In this document: in pieces, positions 21,001 through 33,826 of the stretch
Position numbering within the stretch: the stretch's first letter is position 1
How the letters are laid out: every line of letters starts with the position of its first letter
Assembly (NCBI GenBank): GCA_964036045.1
Contig: OZ038378.1
Location: forward strand, 182,962,001-183,026,000
DNA from: Eutreptiella sp. 'Long Island Sound 2002'
Taxonomy: Eukaryota > Protista > Euglenida
Reading direction: 5' to 3'
Length of the DNA: 64,000 nt
Notes under the pieces: model-generated
The model's input: the letters and a program-made list of their open reading frames with translations, nothing else
Told to the model about the DNA's origin: nothing
Databases searched by the model: none
Translations under genes and position numbers: made by a program

Positions 21001-24000
21001 CGGAACTCCGCGCGGAGGTCGCGCTCACCCACCACGCCACGAACGCCATGCACTCCGTCTTTCGGTACACGGTGACCTCCCCGAACCGGTCGTGGTCCGT
21101 GCGGCTGCTGCTGGGCCTGTGCCTGCCCCCCGTCGGCCGTCTGGGCCATCGGTGGCATGGCCGCGGCCCCGGACCCGCACACGGGCCTGTTCGGCATCGG
21201 TTGGGACCCCGCGGCCGCGGCGACGGCCCCCGCCTCCGCGGCGTTCGCGCAGGGCTGGCGGCCCACGTACGCGCTGGTCCTGGAGGGCGTGTGGCCCGCC
21301 TCCGGGCGCCTGCCGTACGCCCTGCGGGACCGGCTGCGGTACGCCGAAGGGATGGTGCGGGAACCCGCCGCCCCGCGGTACGCCGTGTCAGGCCCGGCCT
21401 GCGAGGTCCGCACCTGCCGGCACCTGCAGACGGTGGAGGTGGACGTGGGCGATGAGGTGCGCTTCGTGAGCCGAGCGGTTGGCGGGGAGCTGCGGCCGTA
21501 CCCGCGCGGCCTGGCCTGCCAGTGGCACGTCCGGGCACGTCGCGCGTGCATGCGGCTGGAGCTGGAGGTGGCGGTGCTGGAGCTCGTCCGCAGGGCACGC
21601 TTGACCGATGCCGTGGTGTTGCAGGTCTCGGACGCGGTGACCAACACGACCGTCCTCCGCTGGGCCCACGGTGTGGCCGCCCCTGTGCAGTACCATGTGT
21701 TCGCACGGGATGCCTTTTGGGTCACGTTCATCAGCAATGCCGGGGGCTACGAGCACGTGGAGGCCCTGGGGCTCGACTTCACGGTGCGCGGGACGGAGCA
21801 TGACTGCGTCACCCCCACTGCCACGCGCACGCAAAGTGTGTCACCGGAAGCCACACACTCAGCGACGGTGGTGCCCACCGCAACCTCAACGGCAACGGCG
21901 ACCGGTCTTCCCACCGCAACTGCAACAGGGTCCCACGCAACTGCAACAGGGCGTCGCACGGCGACGCCCACCACAACTTTCAGCGGCATGGTGCACCCCC
22001 GCTTTGCCTTCGGAGTCCATGAGCTGGACCCTTCCTGCAACGTGACGGCCACACCTGAGCAGTTTGGCTTTGGGACGCATGGCTTGGCAGCGGGGCCCGC
22101 CTCATTGATGCACTGGGGGCACACTGAAGGTGTTGTGGCCTCCCTGTCGGACCTGTCCGTACAGCGCAGGTACCCCATTTCCGCGGATCGCATGATTTTC
22201 AGCGACGTGGCAGATGGAAAGGTGTATGAATTCACTGGAATGCCAAGCGGGAGGCGCCGCGCCTTGACTGAGCTTCCTGAACTTGACGAGGCCGACCTTG
22301 ACCGCACAGCGCAGGTCATTCGGCTGCAGGTGCAGATCGTAGCGGAGAAGGGCTGCACGTTTTTGCCGGTCGGGGCCAAGTGGTGCTGCTCGACCGGTAC
22401 GACCGGTGGGTGCGCGTGGTGCTGGACTCGACGCACGCCACGGGGAGTGTGCAGTACTTGGCACAGAACGGCGGCCCGTACACCCCTCGGACGTGCCATG
22501 ATACCGTCACTGGCCGTTTCGCCCTGGGGGTGGTGGAGTACAACGGCTGCCAGCACCACGTCGTGTACTTTGGGGAGGACGGCCGGACCGTCCAACGCAA
22601 GCCCATCCCGAAGGGGGACGCTGCGCTGCACACACCGCATTCCCGGGCGAATCCGGTGCGTGTGAGCTCGCGGTAAGTGCTCGGCACGCGGCGTGGTATT
22701 TCGCATCGAAGGGGCTGGGCTGGGGCCGCCGGCTTGGCGTGCGGCCCGCGCTCGGGGTATGCGGGGCAGTCACCGCCGCTCCGTACCTACCCACTCGTAC
22801 CCGCACCCCAAGTGCCACGGCGGTGCCGACAGGCACACTCACGCCGTCGCTCCGTCCCGTCCTCCCCGACGTGTTTCCCGATGGGCGAGGGCCCGACGCC
22901 CGCGACTCACCCACCGCCTACCAATACCTCTGCGGGGCCTGGCTGGACTCGCCACGACAACAAGTCCGGCGCGTGCCCGTCCCCGAGGCCTGTGCCGTCG
23001 ACACGGCGCTGTGCTGCCTGGCGTGGCTGGGCCCGCGCCGGGCATCCTGCGTGTTTGACGTGCGGGCCTTCTGCGATTGATCAGCGGCTAGCGCGACCCT
23101 CCTGCAGCGGCTGGAGGATCCGCGCCTGCCTGCGGTCCCGCCGGAGCTCATTCCTGCGGTGTCTTGCCACTGCAGTGGCCATGGGGCGTGCAATGTGGGG
23201 AGCTACGTGTGCGTGCCCGGGTGGTCGGGCACCGACTGCGCAGTGCCGGTGTGCGCCTCCTGCAGTCAGGGGGTCTGCATGCTGCCTGGGGCCTGCAAAT
23301 GCCACGAGGGGTGGCAGGGGCTGGGGTGTGCAGAGTCCACTCCGCACGCCGCCGCCGCTGTGGCAGTCCGCGCCTTGGCGGTGGTATTGGGTGGATTGGT
23401 AGTGGTGGCGGTGGTGGGAGCGGCATTGGGAGTATGGGTTTTGCGACGGCGGAACCGGAGGGGGTGAGTGGCACCTGATCCTAACCCTATACCCACCCCT
23501 AGATACTTCTGCGTGCCTCCGGCTTCTGATCTCCAATATCTCCCGAGGGTAGGCTCGTTCAGTCGCCAGCAGCGTCCTTTTGGGCGGAGTGTTGATACTG
23601 AAGTGCGCATGACGCAGGAATGCGAAACGTGCCACGCCAAACGGGAATGGCTGGCGGAGCGCGAGGCTGACATCACTTGCGTCTCACGGCGGCTGCTCCA
23701 GTTGGTGGACCCGGAGCTGCCAGTGGAGTCGGATGAGCCGCCCCGGGACACGGTCAGGCGGGTGCTGCCGGACATGCCTGAGGCCACGCTGCCAGTCGAT
23801 GTGCACGTCGAGGGTGCTGGCATGAGCAGCGAGGCGGCGATCTTTGCAGACACCCCAACTACGTCCGCGCCCACCTCACCCCAACGAGTTGAGCCGGTGG
23901 ATGTCACGTTCACCACGCTGGGGACCGAAGGGCACACGGGGCCCACCAGGATCGGCGCTCACTACGATGGTATGCGGCTTGAGGGTAAGGTGACCTTGGT

Positions 24001-27000
24001 CGAGGGCTATCAACGATGGAAGGTGCCGTACACCAGGCGGTACCGCATCGAAGCGCACAGGGCTGCCAGCCACCCGCAACGGTGCAATGAGGTCTGCGAT
24101 TATTTCTGGCACGCGGGCAATGGCGCGATCGTGCACGCGCGGCGACTTTCAGCCGCAAGCCGGCCGGTGTCTGCTTATTCTCGTCGGCCAACACCCGTTC
24201 AAGGCTACTGGTCCATTGCAAACCTGGGGGGGGGGGGCCTCCAAGCCTGTCCAAACAAGGGGGTGGGGGGTGTAACAAATAGGCTCAAAGGGCCAAGCTA
24301 GCAAATCATCTCGAAGAGAGGTTGTTAGACCAAGCACAGGTGCAGGCGTCGTATACCCCCTCTTTTTTGGGTTCGTTCGCATAGCATACCCCCATTATGG
24401 TTTCTGACGTCTAACCCCTTGTAAAATCCTCATTTTAGGACCAAAAATGATCCCCCAATTATTTTTTGGATTTTTACCCTCCTACAACCCCCTACCCGCG
24501 TACTCCTTTTTGGGGGGGGGGGTCGTGGGGGGGGGGGTTAAAAACTTTTTTGCGTATTATGGCCGTTGTGTGTGTTTTTGACCTGGGTCCCAAAGAACTT
24601 TTTTCCAGAATATGGACCCCCAAACCCATGGCCATCGGATATTTTATCATTTTGAATGTTGAATGGTTAGAATATAAATAAAGTCAGTTTTGGAAATCAC
24701 CTCGCAGAGGTTGTTAGATCAAAGCCACGCATGCCTGTATACAAGGGAAAACGCCACATACCCCCCCATTTTGGGCCTTTTTGGGCCTATTTGCGTACCC
24801 TACCTCAAGGGGTTGAATCGTGTGTTTAACCCCTTGTAAAATCATTATTTTGTCCAATAAATGCATCCCCCAATGAGTTTTTGGTCCGGACCCCCCTAGA
24901 CCCCCCCACCTGAAGCCCACTTGTTTGGGGTTTTGAGGGACGTGGGGGGGATGAGGGGGGGGGATGACCCCCCCCTTTTTTGGGGTCGAAAATCATGAAT
25001 CTTTTGGTTTTTTTCGATTTTGAGCCGAAAAAGTGTTTCCGGGTCCCGAATCCATGGGGTTTGTATGGGGCGGAGTGGGATGAGCACTGATGCAGTTTAT
25101 GCATTTTTCGGCCATTTTTGCTATGTTGGCAGTTTTGGCGGCCTTGGTGAACCCATGGTACCCACTATGAGGGGTGTGAGTGGGGATGTTGTGACAGTAT
25201 ATGCCTACTAGGGTACGAAAGGACGTTTTTTGCAGTCTCTAGCCTTGCCGAGGGCCGGTCAAACCCCGTGCCAAAGACGTGAAATGACAGTTTCCACCAA
25301 TAATGGCCTACATGAGTGAATGGGCCGGTGCACAACCTGCTTGTGTAGTTTTTCACCATGGGAAGCTCAAAAATCAAGTTTTCGAAACTTAGTTTTTTGA
25401 TATTGTGATCACCTAAAATGACCATCCAAGGTATGTCATGTCATGTCATGTCATGGAGCGCTAGAGCCATCGTCCGCTGGTCCACCCAGTGGGCGTCCAT
25501 CGGCAGAACGTCTAGCCGTCACACACACACGCACTCCGATGGAATGGGCCCCAGGTGAGGGGGGGCCGAGAGCACCATGCATGGCGCGAAGGAGAGAGGT
25601 ACCCGGACCAAGCTAGGCCCACCACGGGCATGCGAGCGGACGCTCAAAAACACCAGTCCCGCCGACAGGCCCCAGCTTTTTGGGTACTGGTGGGTTTCAC
25701 CTTAAATGGAATGGGCCCCAGGTGAGGGGGGGCTGAGAGCACCATGCATGGCCCGAAGGAGAGAGGCGCCCGGACCAAGCTAGGCCCACCACGGGCATGC
25801 GAGCGGACGCTCAAAGACACCAGTTCCGCCGACAGGCCCCGGCTTTCTGGGAACTGGTGGGTTCCACCTTAGACGGTCGACGCGCGCACTCGAGGCACAC
25901 TTGGTGAGGCAGTGGTGCGTCTGCCCCTCGCAGGCTGCACCGCTGACCCCGGGGGGTGCCCAGGGTGGGTGGCGGCGTCGTCGGCCGGCCTAACTTGGTT
26001 AAGAGAGGACTCTTCCTGGCGATGCCACTGTCATCGAGACCTAGGACCTCCCACCCGGTGGCGAGAGACACAATAACCGCGCGCTGCGGGAGCAACAATG
26101 TTTCTAGGGGCAGGGCCTCAGTCAGTTAAAATGCACCATGTCCTCATTCTGCCGCAGCTCTGCCACCACGTTAGCGTGGTGTGCCACCATCCAGATGTGG
26201 GAAAGGCCAAGTCCATCGGATAGAACGGGACTGTTGGGGCATTTTGACTGTTGGGGTTCATTGGGCTGCTGCGTTGACCAGCGCTGCACCGCTGGACGGG
26301 TCGAATCTGCACGATTCGTAACGGTAAATCAGACCTCAACAGGCATTTTAGATTCAATAGGAGAATCAATTGTAGCCGCATCTGCGTTGTGGGACTGCTT
26401 TGAAACTCGCATTGTCAGCTTCACCTCGGGATTGGTCCGACAACCATGCCGTGTTGCATTGGTCACTGCGTGGTCCAGGATAACGTCGCACGCCATGGGA
26501 TCCAGCATCACCACATGAAGGGGGCATTCAAATTCGACGTCTCTGCCCCTCACAAAGTCTGCCGCAAACTCGTGAAGATTGACAACCTCCGGCTCTGATT
26601 CGTATTGTCCGGCCACCATCCTCAGCATCGCTTCGCGCAATTTGCACCACCACATCCCTTTGAAGAGGCCGTCAGAGGCTTTTGAAAGGAGATCGACTGA
26701 GGGCGAACGTCCTAGACCTCATGAACGCCAACTCTGCGGTCTCAATGCCACGAAATCCTGGTGGCTTGACATTGGAATTGAAAGATCCATCGCATTCGTT
26801 TGGGGTCACGGCGAAAAACCTCGGGTAAGACGATGTGCTTGGTGCCCTGGACTTGCCCTTTGACTGCACGGACACCCATGTTGCGATACTTCGGGCCCCG
26901 TCCGAAAAGGTGCTAGACTTGTACGCCACCGAATGCACAGACAGACCCCCCTGGGTCTGGCATGCTGTATGCACCCATCGTGGAACTACCAGGGCTTCGG

Positions 27001-30000
27001 GATACATGTGAGAACCGCGAGGAACAAGCATCGTGTGCTTTGGACATCCCTCGTCTCTTGGACTGCTCGGAGTTGCTTCGTGCCCCATCCGGGCCATGGT
27101 AACAATCCCCCAAGACAGAGGACCTACTTGAAGGGGCTGGAGAAGCTGAGCTTGGATTTACTGGGCGGACTTTCGGGGAAGATCTGCCTAGGGCCTTGAA
27201 TGGGGAGCGAGATTCTGATGGAGTGTCCCACGGGTGCACTGCGGATGCAATGAGAGTCGCACCCTCCTCAGCGGTGGCAACGTATCTCTCTTTCGAAAGG
27301 GACACCCGTAGGCTCGGAGTCCCCGGTAAATTGACAGAACCCAGCACTGGTGCAAAAGCAGAAGTCAGGGACGAAACCACGCTACTGCGGGGCTCGCTAG
27401 TGCGGGCCTCGCTACTTCGGAGCTCATCCAGGACCATCGGAGAATGTCGTCGAGCGGGATCAACATTCGTTGTTCTGAAATCAAGGAACCCTTGGGCCTC
27501 TTGGACCTAAAAAAAAAAATGTCCGAGTAACATGGGACATAGACAGTTCCCGTGATCAGCAAGGTCGTCCTGCAGGCAACAAGCATCGACAGCAGGTGGC
27601 GGAGTTCAAGATGCTGGGGGCTCCTGTGGCAGCGACACGGGGAACACGAGGAGCATAGCGGCAGCACAGCCTGTTTTGTTCTTGTAGTCGTTCCCGGCTG
27701 TGCCCGAGCTGCTACTGCAGGCACACGCGGCTGCGTCGCTTGTTTTGCGAAAGCAGAGTCAAGGGTGGGGTGGGGGGGGGGGGGGGGCAAAGCTGTGGCA
27801 GACCGCCTCGCTCAGTTGACACCCCATTTCCCATCCCCATTCTGCCCGTGGTTGGTGCTGTGAAAAAACTGATAGGGCTTGTTTGTCGCAGCCCAAAAAC
27901 GGCCTGGTGGAGCAGTGTGCCAGCTGGGGTCAGGTGGCACTGCAGATTGAGCCCTGGGACCATGAGTAGGTCCCCCGGGTGGGCTGTCGGCTGGTCGGGG
28001 CATGTCGGCCCAGAGCGTGCCTATGGACTGGCCTCCGCGCCGTTAGGGGGGCGAGGAGGGGGGGGGGGGGCTGGGGAGGGGGCGTTTGCATTTCACCCAG
28101 GACCGGACTGGGCTGACGCACGACACCGTTAGCACCCCTGCCACAGGCAGGGGCCCAGGCCTTGTCGTGTGGGGCTCCGCACCTGGTCACCATCCCTGGG
28201 TGGGTGGCTAGCTCGGCATCCAAGGTATGTAAAGCATGTTTTAGGCCGTATTTATTTCGTTTTCACCTTATTTGGGTATTGGGCGCGCGGGGGGGGGGGG
28301 GGTCTCCCAAGTGATTGGTACACAACCTGCTTTCCACCAATAATGGCCTACATGAGTGAATGGGCCGGTGCACAACCTGCTTGTGCCGTTTTTCACCATG
28401 GGCACCTACAAAATCGAAGTTTCTGAAACTCATTTTTTTGATACCGTGATCACCTAAAATGATTATCTAAGGTATGTAAAGCATGTTTTATGCAGTATTT
28501 ATGTGTTTTTCACCCTATTTGGGTATTGGGCGCGGGGGGGCGGGGCACCCAAGGGATTGGTACACAACCTGCTTATGCAGTTTTCCACCCTGGGCAGCTC
28601 AAAAATCGAAGTTTCTGAAACTTATTTTTTTGATACTGTGGTCACCGAAAAATGACCATCCAAGCATGTTTTAGCCCGTATTTATGTAGTTTTTACCCTA
28701 TTTTGGGTATGTATTGCTTGGGGTAGATTCTCTGCGAGGTGGACTTGCTGAAGGCAATAGAATTTCCATTTTTTAAGCTGCAGAGGCTAGAAACTGCATA
28801 CATAGGTTGTTCCCCAACCCCCTTGGGAGCCCCCCCCCCCCCCAAACACTCAAATAGGGTGAAAAACACACAAAGAGAGCATTCGTCTTATAGCGTCCAC
28901 TGGCCTATATACAGAGGTCGAGGGGCGGGGAGGTGGGCCGAGTCGAGTTCAGGCGCCCGTGTCCTCCCCTACAGGCCCCCCGCCTGTGCCCGCACGGTGG
29001 CCAGGAGGGACGAGGCGGTCATGACTAAGTCACTTCCGAGCTCGCCCTCCCGTGCAGCCGCCGCCGCGGCGCTCTTGCCCTCCGGGCTGGGTTCCCCGGC
29101 GCCCCGGAGGACGCGCCCGTCAATGGGGGGCTGCTGCTGGCCGCCCCCCGCCGCTTCACCCCTCCACCCTGGGCCAGCCACAGGCCGAGGCCCTGCTGCG
29201 CGCCCTTGTACCCTGCCTGGGGTGAGTCGGTCACCCCGTGTCCCCTCATCACTCCATGCCCCTCCGGGGCCGGCCACAGGCCAAGGCCCTATACCACCTC
29301 TTTCTCCCTCTTTTGGAGTAAGGGGGGGGGGGGCTATGCGCACTCACCTTGGGGAGGGGGTGATTGTGGTCCCCCATCCCCCCTGGCCCCTCTGGGGATG
29401 CCCCTCCGTTGGGGCACCGTGCTGCCGACAGGGGATGGTCTTGTCCTTTCCCTACCGTCAATTGGGGGCGGGGGTCGGGGTACCCAAACCCTCCCCCCTC
29501 CCAGCACTCTGCTTGTCCCTGTCCCAGGGTTAGGTTAGGGGAGGGGCGTGGAGGCAGCCCTTAGGGCCTCTCCAGCACAAGGCCCTCGTCCTCTGGCAGC
29601 GCTTCGCCATTGAGCAATGCACTAGTCGGGCGGGCGGCAAGGCCCGCAGGCAGCGCACCGGCAACGGCATGCAAGATTGGCAGCACTGGTGGCTGCGAAG
29701 GTAGCGCCGTCGCCGCTACCCCCCTCCTGTTCCCCCGGGGCCTGGGGGGCAGGGGGCTGTCATCTGGGCAATGGAGGGGAGGGGTGGAGCCCCACCCCTC
29801 CCTACGACATACAAGAGCTGTCCCCCAGGGCGCCGCACAGGGCTTGCGTCCCGGGGGAGGGTTAGCGTATAAATCGATGGGGGAGGGGGGGGCAGCACAG
29901 CGCAGCCCCTGCTCCCAAAAACCGTGCAGCAGCAGCTCCCGCACTGCATCTTGCAGTTCTTGGATGCACCTGCCGGTGCATTCCTCCTCGTCCTGGAGGA

Positions 30001-33000
30001 CCCCAAACTGGGGGATGGGGTGTTCTGGTTTCTGCACCCCCTCCCCCCCCCCCTGGATACCTCCTGTTCGGTGCTGCCCCGTCCGCCAGGACTGGTGGCC
30101 TGGGCACTATGGCTGGTGCCACCACTGCCGCCAGACTTGATGGTCTAGACGCCATTGCTGGCGCTACCACTACTGGCGCCGCTACTTCCGCCAGACCTGG
30201 TGGTCTGGACCCACTGCCCGAGCTGCAACGTCCGCCAGACCGGGCGGTCTGGACATCACTGCTGGTGCTGCCACTTCCGCTAGACCTCGTGGTCTGGATG
30301 CCACTGCCGGTGCTGCCACCTCCGCCAGACCTGGTCTGGACGCCATTGCTGGTGCTGCCAGACCTGGTGGTCTGGACGTAACTGTTGGTGCTGCCGCTTC
30401 CGTCAAACCTAGTGGCTTGGACGCCACTACTGGACGCCACTACTGGCGCTGCCACTTCCGCCAGACGTGGTGGTCTGGACGCCACTACCGGTGTGCCAGT
30501 GCTGTAGCTTCCGCCAGACCTAGTGGCCTGGACGCCACTGCTGGTGCTGCCACTTCCGCCAGAGCTGGTGGTCCGGACGTCACTGCTGGTGCTGCCACTT
30601 CCGTCAGACCTGGTGGTCTGGACGCCACTACTGGCGCTGCCACTTCCGCCACTTCCTCCAGACCTGGTGGTCTAGACGCCACTGCTGGTACTGCCAACTC
30701 CGTCAGACCTGTTGGTGTGGACGCCACTGCCGGTGCAGCCACCTGTGCCAGACTTGGTGGTCTAGACGCCACTACTGGCGCTACTGGCGCTCCCGGCTTC
30801 GCTAGACCTGGTGGTCTGGACGCCACTGCTGGTGCTGCCACTTCCGCTAGAGCGAGTGGTCTGGACGCCACGGCCGGTGTTGTAACATCCGGACCCCCCG
30901 CCCCCCGAAGTCGACGTTGACGGCGGCACAGGGGCAGCCTCACTGTTGCCGCCACTGCCCTCGAATCTGGCTCCGCTAGCGCTAGCGCCAGAGCTGGGCG
31001 TCACCCGTAGGGTTAAGGGTGGGTCAGGGGGAAGGCCACACTTGGATTTATGGATGGCGCCCAAGCGAGGCGCGGGTGGGAAGCTAGGGCCACAGCAAGG
31101 GGTTAGACTGCCGCCGCCGCCTGACGCCATCTGGGCCCTGGGTGCGCCACTGACGGAGGGGCTGAAGCCCCCAGAGTGCCCAGGGATGCCGCGCTCCTCC
31201 ACGGCGCCCACCTGGGCTATGGCCGTATAGACAGCCTCCGGGTGGGGGGGCAGGTCGGCCCCCGGGCCCCCGAGGGGCATGTGCACCGCGTTTCCCACAA
31301 TGTCTGCGCAATATGCAACCCGCTGGCTGCCCCAGAGAGCTGCTGCGCCCAGCCCTGCGGCCTTCTCTGCTGCTGCATCGTCAGTGTCCATGAGGTCGGC
31401 CCACGACCGCCGGGCAGAGCCTGTGGGGCTAGGGTGCTAGGGGATGCATCCCCTCCAGCCTCCGGTGTCCCAGAAGCCTCCTGACGGCCGCCCGAGGAAC
31501 CAGCAACCAGTATGGCCGCCAACGCGGCCAGCACGGCCGCTATCTTGGCGGCGCTGGGCCGCCGCTGCGCGACGCTGGCGGCGGCTTGCGGTTGTCGGCA
31601 CCATTGGCGATGCCGGGACGGTCGTCATCGTGGGGGGCAGGGAGGGCCAGCGGGCGTCCCCCTCCTCCCACAGGGTACCCTGACATACCTGACCGGCTAC
31701 GGGCGGCGGCAGCGGCGGCGGCGCCTGCGCCGCCACATTGTTGACGCCCCGATGGGGGAGCAGGACCGCCCCCTGGTACCCCATGATGCCCAGGGGGTCC
31801 GTCCCCGGGCAAGCGAGGTGCACATCCTCGTCGACACCCCGCTTGTATTGTAAGCGGCGAGCGTCCGGCCTGGCATGAGCGAGAAGGGTGTGCCCCCATT
31901 CATGAGCCAACCCCCCCCCAGGGTCCTCCCAATTGGTGATGTAATGAAACGGTGCCAAGGGAGCTCCCCCTTCATGGAGGGCCCCCCGCGGCAGAGACAT
32001 GGTGATTGCGGCTTGGCTAAGGCAGCCTCGCCATGTGAGAGGCTTGAAAAACACACAAAGAGAGTCTAAAACATGCTTTACATGGGATATTTTGGTATTG
32101 TGAATGGTCAGGACATCAAGAAAATTTTGAAAAATTTTTCATCTTTCAACTTTATAGGGCTTCAGCTCTTGGGGCTGGGCTCACCAACATGACCCCACAC
32201 TCTACCATTCCACATTCTACACACATTTGACAGATCATAGCTCACACACATAATGCCCCCTAGTTGGCGCTGCACCCACTGATGCAAACCACCTACCCCT
32301 ATTTTTTTTGTGGGGGGCGGGGGGGCTGCCTCTTTCCTATGCACCCTAACCAAAACAATCCTTGGAGGCAAAATGGTTGCAGAGAACTTTCCAATTGGTG
32401 CAGAGAAAACTTCGCGACAATTGAAAATTGTGGTACAAAATACCCGTGATTCAGAATCCCCCCATCCCCCCTCCAAACACCCAAATAGGTAAAAAACACA
32501 TAAAGAGGGTCTAAAACATGGCGGGGTCCCGGGTCCCAAATCTGGGTACCTCCAGTCAACTCCCCCCATATGTCCCCTTGCCAGTGAGGACTCAACTGTT
32601 TTCACGCTAGTTAGGCTGTTTAGTTGCACCTGAAAATATTTCAAAATTCGACTTTTTATGAAACCCTTCCGTTGCTACTAGGATGGGTTTGGATGATCAT
32701 TTGGTAACAGTGCGGGTACTTGAGCACCCATAGGGACCCACATAGTGGCCGCTAGGCCTCTGTAGCCCATGCCATGGGCCCCCCAAAAGCCCCAAAATTG
32801 TTGTTGCGTAGGCTGTTGAGTGACGCTTGAAACAATTTCAAATTCCGACTTTTTCCAAAACCCATCTGTTGCCTCTAGGATGGGTTTGGGTGATCATTTG
32901 GTGACAATACGGGTACTTGAGCACCCATGGGGACCCATGTAGTGGCCGCTAGCCCGAGCCACGGGCCCCCCAAAAGCTTCAAAATTGCTGTTTGTAGGTG

Positions 33001-33826
33001 GTTTAGTGGCATTTGGTGTGTGCACAAGCACACAAGCAGTAAGGGGTTGGGATGTTGGGAAACAGGCTGGGATGGCCCTCCCCGTGCATTTGAGGTGTAA
33101 TTCTTGGAATTTGTCTGGGGTCATTTGGTGGGCCCAGCCCCAAGAGCCCAATAAGAGGGGGAGGGGTGTGGGAAAAAGGCTTGAAGGCCCCCCCCACCCG
33201 GAGTTGCAATGGATCCCGGGCCCAACCCGGTCAACAGTTTCAGCGGTGGTGGCAGTGGAACTGTTGTGATAATAGGCGCCGATCTCCGAACGGCAGAGCC
33301 CATTCTGGTTGCCGGGGGGGGTGGATCTTGGCGGACCTTCTATTCAGAAATGGGGGACCCCACTCTCTGTCACGCGACAATTGAGAGGACGGGTGTCAAC
33401 GGGGGTTTCGGACTTCCAGGTGGCCCTGGCGGTGCTGGATCACGGCATCGGACCCAAAGCGATGCGGGATCGGGTGCAGCAGGTTTCTCAGGTTCCGTGA
33501 CAGATTGTTTTGATGGCATGACATCAGCGGCACAGTCGTTCCGGGACGGCGGGATTGGTGGGACGTTCAAAGGCATTCGGGCCGACTGCAATGGTGGCTT
33601 TGGTTGTGGCGGCTGTGGTGGATGGGGTGGGTCTGGCGGGGTTGGCGGCTACTCCGGCGGCTCTCCAGGGAACGACCTTACTGTGATGTCAGCAGGCGGC
33701 GGTGGTTCCTTCAACCTCGGCCTGGAGGCACGGAGGCAGGTGCTGAAGACAGGCAGGCAGCAGCGCAGCGCACTCAGAGGATTTTGGACAGGTCCATGCT
33801 GTTGCTATCACTCATTGTTTCTGTGA
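18081..33826 (+). CDS. Large cell-surface protein: signal peptide, CUB, Ser/Thr/Ala mucin stalk, EGF, CUB, EGF, CUB-like, EGF, TM, then an ALK/LTK-type glycine-rich domain. Frameshifted as assembled (possible pseudogene or assembly indels)
   Basis: CUB motifs (RSPFYPADYGNGDQCTI; RYPPNARCPWRI...FTSDASTEFSGF; PYPRGLACQWHV), EGF motifs (CVCDPGWAGALC; CHCSGHGAC...GWSGTDC), TM AVVLGGLVVVAVVGAALGVWVLRRR. Gly-rich domain FTTLGTEGHTGPT...GYQRWKVPYTRRYRIEA...LILVGQ resumes at ~33218 with GGGSGT...PILVAGGGG...GGFGCGG...GGYSGG...AGGGGSFN. About 6 frameshifts and in-frame TGAs at 20468 and 23078. Confidence 0.8.
19164..19925 (+). repeat. Internal ~230-bp duplication in the mucin stalk (19164-19392 vs 19698-19925)
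   Basis: Near-identical CTASATSSGTSSGTSSASRSASSTATLTTTPSAVTTATTTAS coding blocks, period ~534 bp. Confidence 0.9.
23464..23502 (+). other. 39-nt conventional GT-AG intron just after the TM helix
   Basis: GG|GTGAGT...cccctAG|A; removal deletes the TGA at 23465 and fuses ORFs 23159 and 23468 in frame (RRNRRG-YFCVPP). Confidence 0.85.
25540..25872. repeat. Tandem duplication of a ~167-bp unit
   Basis: atggaatgggccccaggtgagggggg...ggtgggtttcacctta occurs twice (~25540 and ~25707). Confidence 0.9.
26121..26680 (-). pseudogene. Histidine-kinase HATPase_c (catalytic) domain fragment
   Basis: VVNLHEFAADFVRGRDVEFEC...MLDPMACDVILDHAVTNATRHG (N-box-like)...FTVTNRAD...SDGLGLSHIW (G2-box-like); in-frame TGA at 26329-26331; no H-box seen. 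Confidence 0.7.
28880..32044 (-). mobile_element. 3.17-kb insertion with a 20-bp target-site duplication, carrying a frameshifted ORF with 15-aa repeats
   Basis: TGAAAAACACACAAAGAGAG at 28860-28879 and 32045-32064; empty-site-like copy at ~32485. ATG at 32000 (MSLPRGALHEGG) lies 45 nt from the element end, with protein-like pieces through 29561; no RT or transposase motif seen. Confidence 0.75.
30080..30900. repeat. ~45-bp minisatellite (gccactgctggtgctgccacttccgccagacctggtggtctggac), roughly 15-17 units
   Basis: Directly visible tandem units; the minus strand reads (PPGLAEVAAPAVASR)n. Confidence 0.9.

Follow-up and report, generated by a model that had tools for sequence, protein, structure and literature searches.

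A site-specific LINE and its apparent non-autonomous partner at one base of a tandem repeat unit in a euglenid genome, with a probable chance neighbor

Several long interspersed nuclear elements (LINEs) that encode an apurinic/apyrimidinic (AP) endonuclease insert at a defined place in another repeated element, e.g., Tx1L in the Tx1D element of Xenopus laevis and Tx1-Mar, together with SINEU, in Mariner-N4_AMi of crocodilians; these Tx1 systems include a non-autonomous partner with the same target preference, and the clade, to which the microsatellite-targeting Kibi and Koshi also belong, is described as found in animals (PMC4494074). Animals are the best-described hosts of site-specific LINEs that live in other repeats (Tx1 of frogs and crocodilians; R1/R2 in ribosomal DNA (rDNA)). 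Here we describe such a LINE in a euglenid. The window that we analyzed is a stretch of 64,000 nucleotides from Eutreptiella sp. 'Long Island Sound 2002' (contig OZ038378.1, positions 182,962,001 to 183,026,000, forward strand; window positions are counted from its first letter), in which two unrelated inserts, insertion 1 and insertion 2, interrupt neighboring copies of a repeat built of 191-bp units, family D. Insertion 2 has both of its ends, its exact target base, and its target-site duplication (TSD) in common with a LINE that encodes a reverse transcriptase (RT) and a probable AP-type endonuclease; that is, the lifestyle of a site-specific LINE with a non-autonomous partner, known from Tx1/Tx1D and Tx1-Mar/SINEU, is seen here in a euglenid genome. 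A full-text search of one collection of papers found no relevant report on site-specific non-long-terminal-repeat retrotransposons in Euglena.

Tx1 belongs to the L1 group, and the duplication made by Tx1L is about 23 bp; the 20-bp duplication found here is of similar size, and the solved RT that is nearest to that of our LINE is L1 ORF2p. The likeness to Tx1L and Tx1-Mar lies in an AP-type LINE inside another repeat and a partner with the same target, a likeness of lifestyle. There are also differences: the host is a euglenid protist, and in place of a DNA transposon the LINE targets a tandem unit of 191 bp in the tail of a retroposon-like element. Its partner is 3.2 kb long, has no RNA polymerase III (Pol III) head, and has both ends in common with the LINE.

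The initial annotation of the window had reported two long duplications, and both are real: read directly, the 14-bp TSD 1 (CATCCAAGGTATGT) and the 20-bp TSD 2 (TGAAAAACACACAAAGAGAG) each occur as an exact pair (Table 1), enclosing 2780 bp (insertion 1) and 3165 bp (insertion 2), respectively. When mapped to a reference D unit of 191 bp (window 28368-28558), TSD 1 falls at positions 98-111 of a plus-oriented copy and TSD 2 at positions about 126-145 of a minus-oriented copy; the sites, as had been stated, are therefore no more than 30 bp apart in copies of opposite orientation, on either side of AAAGCATGTTTTA (four matches in the window vs 0.06 expected). We consider it probable that these are two unrelated target-primed events in neighboring, oppositely oriented D copies, that is, one insertion of a site-specific LINE's partner and one chance neighbor.

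Copies of the insertion 2 family occur on many chromosomes. In the sampled loci, the LINE and the short element are co-oriented at one exact D base with a 20-bp duplication: all 23 of the 23 ends reading ..GACGAATG adjoin one 20-bp D sequence in one orientation relative to D, and ten opposite ends (sense strand ..GGCCTCTTATTGTG..) have the same 20-mer directly before them. In targets reading ..TTTTAGACCC.., the base that follows ..CGAAT is G; therefore, ..CGAATG is the end of the element, and the duplication measures 20 bp. The flanking 20-mers are identical or nearly so at each locus and different between loci, with private variants present in both flanks (e.g., cacgtaaatacgg in L052, catacagaggg in L063, and cacacaaagagag in the window); because these variants are paired within the locus, the 20-mers are duplications of each local target and neither parts of a copied composite nor a recombination core. 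The duplication restores the target, and head-to-tail stacks with exactly one target copy between the elements occur in L053, L054, L065, and L071. In a copy of ~980 bp (L072), the 3' end is normal, the 5' end differs, and the duplication is intact, i.e., this copy is 5'-truncated; therefore, the sense strand of the family is the minus strand of the window, which is the plus orientation of D.

These junctions bear on two other ways of obtaining an insert between repeats. Insertion 2 could have entered D only once, the composite of D and insert then being spread by segmental duplication or by a larger element with no site-specific insertion, and some copies do lie in complex tandem blocks (with a 2.8-kb period on C22 and nine 3' ends ~951 bp apart on C5); however, besides the match of the 20-mers within and their difference between loci, the flanking D copies vary in variant and array length, 5'-truncated copies retain intact duplications, and an enzyme-encoding LINE with different internal sequence is found at the same base, so we regard a spreading composite as highly improbable. 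Even less credible is integration by a recombinase, in which an element-borne 20-mer would cross with the D 20-mer as in phage att sites and the repeats would be the crossover core: the 5' leader GGCCTCTTATTGTG is similar to the target (G/ACCCTCTTTATGTG), but the private variants of the local target are present in both flanks, copies are 5'-truncated, and the partner encodes an RT and an AP-endonuclease-like domain and no recombinase. The initial annotation had allowed that the repeats might be assembly joins or the edges of segmental duplications; this is contradicted by the retention, in both families, of defined ends at many loci, each copy with its own duplication.

Genome-wide, the 3'-end word of the insertion 2 family occurs 467 times (vs one control match) and the canonical 5' junction 214 times; 5'-truncated copies with an intact 3' end occur. 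In the first 100 of the 3' ends listed, exact GTGTTTTTCA follows at the exact offset in 65; the check is a gapped pattern that requires the exact 10-mer at that offset, and, given the divergence of D, this is the proportion that would be expected if nearly all of the 3' ends lie in D.

Some observations on the copies stand apart from this argument. Most of the short-element copies (L052-L072) are flanked by the target variant ..CCCTCTTTATGTG.., and the three LINE copies that we read (L073, L075, and L076) by ..GCCGTATTTACGTG..; in this small sample, the variants may reflect subfamily-specific targets or a difference in age. On C5 (G000:C5:154021947-154029085), nine 3' ends on one strand, ~951 bp apart and each followed by the target 10-mer, are a stack or an amplified array of short copies. 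Beside a stacked element on C14 (L071:5874-6149, minus strand) is an open reading frame (ORF) that resembles a SAP/HeH motif (..LTKVEFKAISRKHGLSVRGGKGELMERV..).

The initial annotation had also advised looking for an autonomous RT/endonuclease element with the same target, and such an element is present at the D base. On C1 (60719196), an element end ..CCAGTGGACGCTAATCGGCGAATG is located there, and LINE copies on C1 and C17 end ..CCAGTGGACG(C/T)TAATCG(G/A)CGAATG at that base; three LINE junctions in D were read directly. Approximately 2.5 kb upstream of the C1 end, an ORF with a YADD motif (in L074) scores 0.96 to RVT_1 clusters in a protein atlas and has many relatives in public assemblies, some of them with RVT_1 on record; one relative of the LINE RT, P0002 (85% identical), matches Pfam RVT_1 with 34.8 bits (cut-off 29.6). 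The RT ORF alone found no match among solved structures; a profile of fourteen relatives was required, and this matched human LINE-1 ORF2p (E 4e-17) and R2 (E 8e-10). The ORF downstream of the RT has no Pfam match.

The genomic RT copies have open frames of up to 1837 aa. On C17, the copy with the 1837-aa frame ends at the same D base and is followed by intact D units; upstream of its RT is an open frame of 450 codons in which GDFN, SRID, and SGH motifs occur. This frame matches Exo_endo_phos below the Pfam threshold (E 0.006, 16.8 bits vs a cut-off of 24.5), and its best, weak match among solved structures is to the SRID..SDH end of APE2 (E 0.36); the domain N-terminal to the RT is, then, a probable AP-type endonuclease. 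A LINE of the R2/CRE type was considered and rejected, given the AP-endonuclease-like domain N-terminal to the RT, the lack of a Pfam match in the ORF downstream of the RT, where that type would have a PD-(D/E)XK endonuclease, and the lower score of the RT profile to R2 than to L1. At the other end of the LINE, a 5' junction on C6 reads D..TTTTAG, then GCCGTATTTACGTGTTTTTCA, then GGCCTCTTATTGTGAACCTGCACGTGG.., with the same duplication and the leader GGCCTCTTATTGTG..; the 5'-junction word (214 occurrences vs 0 controls) is often located 5-7 kb upstream of an RT match on the correct strand, and five of the copies so delimited are listed in Table 1. Thus, an RT-encoding LINE of 9-10.7 kb with a probable AP-type endonuclease uses the site and the duplication of insertion 2.

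The LINE and the short family are linked by their ends. Over its last ~190 nt, the short family is 82-87% identical to the LINE 3' end, and intact short copies are 78-81% identical to the LINE leader over their first ~58 nt (the window copy of insertion 2 lacks 13 nt of the leader); beyond these common ends the two diverge, and the 4.5 kb upstream of the LINE tail have no similarity to insertion 2. The short family is modest in size beside the LINE, with only about 71 candidate loci for its 5' 300 bp. None of the ORFs in insertion 2 has a Pfam family, and their protein identity among copies is no higher than their DNA identity; because the ORFs are conserved no better as protein than as DNA, we treat insertion 2 as non-coding. 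Common ends, site, orientation, and stagger are the classical signature of a passenger that is copied by the proteins of a LINE, and from this anatomy we infer that insertion 2 is mobilized in this way. A consensus fold of the common 3' tail (five sequences) predicts two long hairpins; the covariation is unsupportive (term +1.57).

Other identities for the inserts were considered and set aside. No ribozyme, including hammerhead or hepatitis delta virus (HDV)-like ribozymes, and no Rfam family at E < 0.4 was found across both inserts (24000-33500), and no tRNA was found in either; with lengths of 2.8 and 3.2 kb and neither a tRNA nor an Rfam Pol III-type head, the inserts are not short interspersed nuclear elements. 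A Penelope-like identity was rejected, given the absence of a hammerhead in 24000-33500 and the endonuclease of the partner LINE, which is AP-like and not of the GIY-YIG type of Penelope-like elements. A HEWGH motif at 31437-32054 is without support.

The junctions suggest how insertion would proceed. The LINE endonuclease would nick D at ..GCATGTTTTAG(A/G)^CC.. on the priming strand, with a second nick on the other strand, 20 nt on, after ..GTGTTTTTCA; reverse transcription would begin at the nick from the RNA 3' end ..GACGAATG, with no poly(A), and fill-in of the staggered nicks would duplicate 20 bp. The short element would be copied in trans by the LINE proteins, presumably by way of the last ~190 nt and the first ~58 nt that the two have in common. 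The start of the leader, GGCCTCTTATTGTG, resembles the start of the target (G/ACCCTCTTTATGTG), and this likeness might help to join the 5' end.

The R1 and R2 elements of arthropod rDNA behave similarly: they use one exact base in a fixed orientation, have no poly(A), and form 5'-truncated copies and head-to-tail stacks. The probable endonuclease here is N-terminal to the RT and AP-like, as in R1 and unlike R2; the target differs from that of both, because it is a non-coding repeat and not 28S rDNA, and no HDV-like ribozyme was found in the short element or its flanks. A second comparison is with the trypanosomatids, which belong to the same phylum, Euglenozoa. In the pairs ingi/RIME and L1Tc/NARTc, as here, an autonomous LINE is accompanied by a short partner that is made up of the two ends of that LINE. 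A 2A sequence has been reported in L1Tc of Trypanosoma cruzi, and the 2A-like motif DVEPHPGP before the endonuclease of our LINE recalls it; the motif (GDVEPHPGP, with His for the usual Asn) is located just before the endonuclease at ~codons 97-106 of frame 1 in L077 (G000:C17:3375000-3376350). However, ingi and L1Tc prefer their sites only loosely, duplicate 12 bp, and have poly(A) tails, whereas the LINE described here has an exact site, a 20-bp duplication, and no poly(A).

The landing repeat, D, is no free satellite: in thirty genomic copies, a common unique head of ~600-700 bp starting CACCTCGCAGAGG leads into 191-bp units, the number of which varies, and these lead into a fixed 3' end ..GCCGAAGGCAATAGAATTT; some copies are shortened at the 5' side. 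This organization suggests that D is a retroposon-like element. The unoccupied LINE target word occurs in about 23,920 copies (vs 0 controls) in a genome of 2.28 Gb, so D makes up ~0.2% of the genome. In the window, the full-length element A (24699-28766, plus strand), which holds insertion 1, is nested in the older, minus-oriented element B, which holds insertion 2; by BLAST, positions 1-754 of the full-length D element L014 align with window 24699-25446 at 89% identity.

Insertion 1 belongs to another family, with another habitat. On its sense (minus) strand it extends from ..CCGAGCTAGCC (5' end) to ..CCATGACATGACATGACATG (3' end) with a (CATGT)n tail, and its last 562 bp also occur alone as an abundant short element. 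The copies with both ends on C13, C2, C8, and C9 have their own 11-13 bp duplication or microsatellite flanks; other relatives, short or long, lie within tracts of (CA)n, (CACT)n, or (CACCCA)n or are flanked by duplications of 11-13 bp (examples in the family are cccaccccacc, acatggtgaagag, and cttgac(a/g)catgt). D was found in the flanks of none of the relatives at the 19 other sampled loci. Genome-wide, the family has about 225 3' ends, and the junction of D with the insertion 1 tail is unique; the other pattern matches are plain (CATGT)n, for which a reversed control is equally frequent. With 225 copies and D at 0.2% of the genome, the numbers expected by chance are ~0.45 copies in D as a whole and ~0.14 copies no more than 30 bp from the LINE site.

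The target of insertion 1 ends ..GGTATGT and so prolongs the tail of (CATGT)n repeats by a further four to five bases; microhomology of this sort is usual in target-primed insertion. Insertion 1 would be the work of a different machinery, whose family lands in CA/TG-type microsatellites and which would have landed once off-target, where D offers ..GGTATGT beside the tail repeat; its nearness to the LINE site is most likely chance, helped by the TATGT microhomology. The family resembles microsatellite LINEs (Kibi, Koshi, and the tail-repeat LINEs) in its simple-repeat tail, its copies in similar repeats, and its short duplications, and differs from them in that the window copy is an off-target event in D.

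The initial annotation had assigned both inserts to one site-preferring system that recognizes a ~50-bp stretch of D and moves unrelated, non-autonomous cargo in trans. For insertion 2 the idea of a D-targeting system holds, since it has the ends and the site of an RT-encoding LINE; for insertion 1, with its different ends and microsatellite relatives, it fails. The long duplications on both inserts and the ≤30 bp between the sites in the D unit speak for a single system, but the inserts have no common ends; insertion 1 has a (CATGT)n tail and sampled relatives that are in microsatellites and never in D; in a family of about 225 copies, it alone is joined to D; and the LINE family keeps to one base with a 20-bp stagger, whereas insertion 1 has a 14-bp stagger, is displaced by 28 bp, and is oppositely oriented relative to D. 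We consider it very unlikely that one system moved both.

Chance proximity must also be weighed against the proposal that D unit ~94-145 is a general hot zone, exposed or easily nicked, for several LINE machineries, in which case the position of insertion 1 would be no accident. Apart from insertions of the LINE family, D is interrupted by three events in the sampled loci: insertion 1; a 97-bp poly(A)-tailed insert (L006:1820-1945) with the duplication GACCATCCAAGG at unit positions 94-105; and an 886-bp poly(A)-tailed insert (L015:1700-2600) with the duplication TTGGGTGCGGGG at unit positions 158-170. From the last two it is evident that this genome has an active LINE machinery of a third, poly(A) type. 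Three kinds of insert are, then, located in the zone (the LINE family at 126-145, insertion 1 at 98-111, and the L006 insert at 94-105); however, there are only three events outside the LINE family, that in L015 is at 158-170, and each site has an explanation in its own sequence, namely, TATGT against the (CATGT)n tail for insertion 1 and the A-rich CTAAAATG for the poly(A) insert. That two of the three events are close together is suggestive and far from significant, and we regard a general hot zone as unlikely. A search for inserts that start right after ..GGTATGT in D (with three non-A bases) gave 263 matches, many of them in one variant satellite array. As a speculation to which we attach little weight, D unit ~94-145 could be a shared landing zone that at least three unrelated machineries, those of the D-specific LINE, the (CATGT)n family, and the poly(A) LINE, hit above chance by virtue of structural or chromatin exposure; if true, D would be a genome-wide safe harbor for several families and not for one. 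As a separate observation, GACCATCCAAGG occurs a third time within the 97-bp insert in L006, which also includes a piece of D in inverted orientation.

Several points weigh against our preferred explanation of a LINE partner and a chance neighbor. The endonuclease match is below the Pfam cut-off and was seen in a single copy. The comparison with the inside of insertion 2 covered the LINE on either side of its middle ~5 kb, and the short element might have arisen from the LINE by deletion and heavy rearrangement. The L006 insert is nearly on the insertion 1 site, which leaves some room for a real second hotspot. Finally, we deduced trans-mobilization, the positions of the nicks, and the sequence of events from the anatomy of the copies.

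The value of the analysis is mainly corrective, in that one of the two inserts is targeted and a chance neighbor is easily mistaken for a hotspot. The LINE also has useful features: its 20-bp target is exact and is empty in ~24,000 copies, the autonomous element appears to be intact, and the partner has both LINE ends; these make it well suited to a clean study of long-target reading by an AP-type endonuclease and of the recognition of a passenger RNA.

Table 1. Features of the window (window positions) and delimited copies of the D-specific LINE (positions on the sequence named)
Feature	Position	Strand	Evidence or remark
D-element A, 5' part	24699..25436	+	~630-bp unique head and first D unit up to the insertion 1 site
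TSD 1, left copy CATCCAAGGTATGT	25423..25436	.	unit positions 98-111
Insertion 1, composite non-autonomous retroposon	25437..28216	- (sense strand)	3' end (CATGA)n; same two ends in copies on C13, C2, C8, C9
562-bp 3' module of insertion 1	25437..25998	-	many 94%-identical 562-bp copies
167-bp tandem duplication within the 562-bp module	25539-25871	-	tandem repeat detection
TSD 1, right copy	28217..28230	.	direct reading
D-element A, 3' part	28217..28766	+	remainder of unit 1, two further units, 3' end ..GAAGGCAATAGAATTT
D-like unit of older minus-oriented element B, left of insertion 2	28770..28879	-	D-unit mapping and BLAST
TSD 2, left copy TGAAAAACACACAAAGAGAG	28860..28879	.	direct reading
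Insertion 2, 3.2-kb apparent non-autonomous partner of the D-specific LINE	28880..32044	- (sense strand)	same ends, same D site in family copies
3' tail common to insertion 2 and LINE, ~190 nt, ending ..CCAGTGGACGCTATAAGACGAATG	28880..29070	-	82-87% identity to LINE 3' ends on C1, C17
45-bp tandem repeats inside insertion 2	30167..30879	.	repeat detection
5' leader common to insertion 2 and LINE; 13 nt missing in window copy	32000..32044	-	alignment with LINE 5' end L076 and two short copies
TSD 2, right copy	32045..32064	.	direct reading
D-like unit of element B, right of insertion 2	32045..32083	-	D-unit mapping and BLAST
Neighboring empty target site, same variant ..TAAAAAACACATAAAGAGGGTCTAAAACATGG	32458..32520	-	D-unit mapping
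LINE copy on C6	5' junction 62126734, RT match 62132345, 3' end 62135961		9.2 kb
LINE copy on C7	5' junction 65562073, RT match 65569003, 3' end 65572712		10.7 kb
LINE copy on C2	5' junction 53694147, RT match 53699488, 3' end 53703694		9.6 kb
LINE copy on C18	5' junction 14560802, RT match 14555080, 3' end 14551305		about 9.5 kb
LINE copy on C7	5' junction 25589445, RT match 25596297, 3' end 25599283		9.9 kb

D elements themselves enter other D-like elements. In the window, element A is located within element B (24400-24698 and 28767-32520), with no clear duplication seen around element A (24699-28766), and in L017 (860-1460) a 5'-truncated D element is located within a minus-oriented D unit. 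On C4 (G000:C4:42380210-42412193), pattern matches outline a long array of a D variant that differs just past ..GGTATGT, with a spacing of ~195-390 bp.

Within insertion 1, an ORF at window 26329-26655 (minus strand) gives a weak hint of HATPase_c_2, a histidine-kinase-like ATPase family (E 0.09), and other copies of the family have ~1 kb of extra sequence at insert position ~1258; together, these are compatible with a captured gene fragment or with intron loss or a deletion in the window copy.

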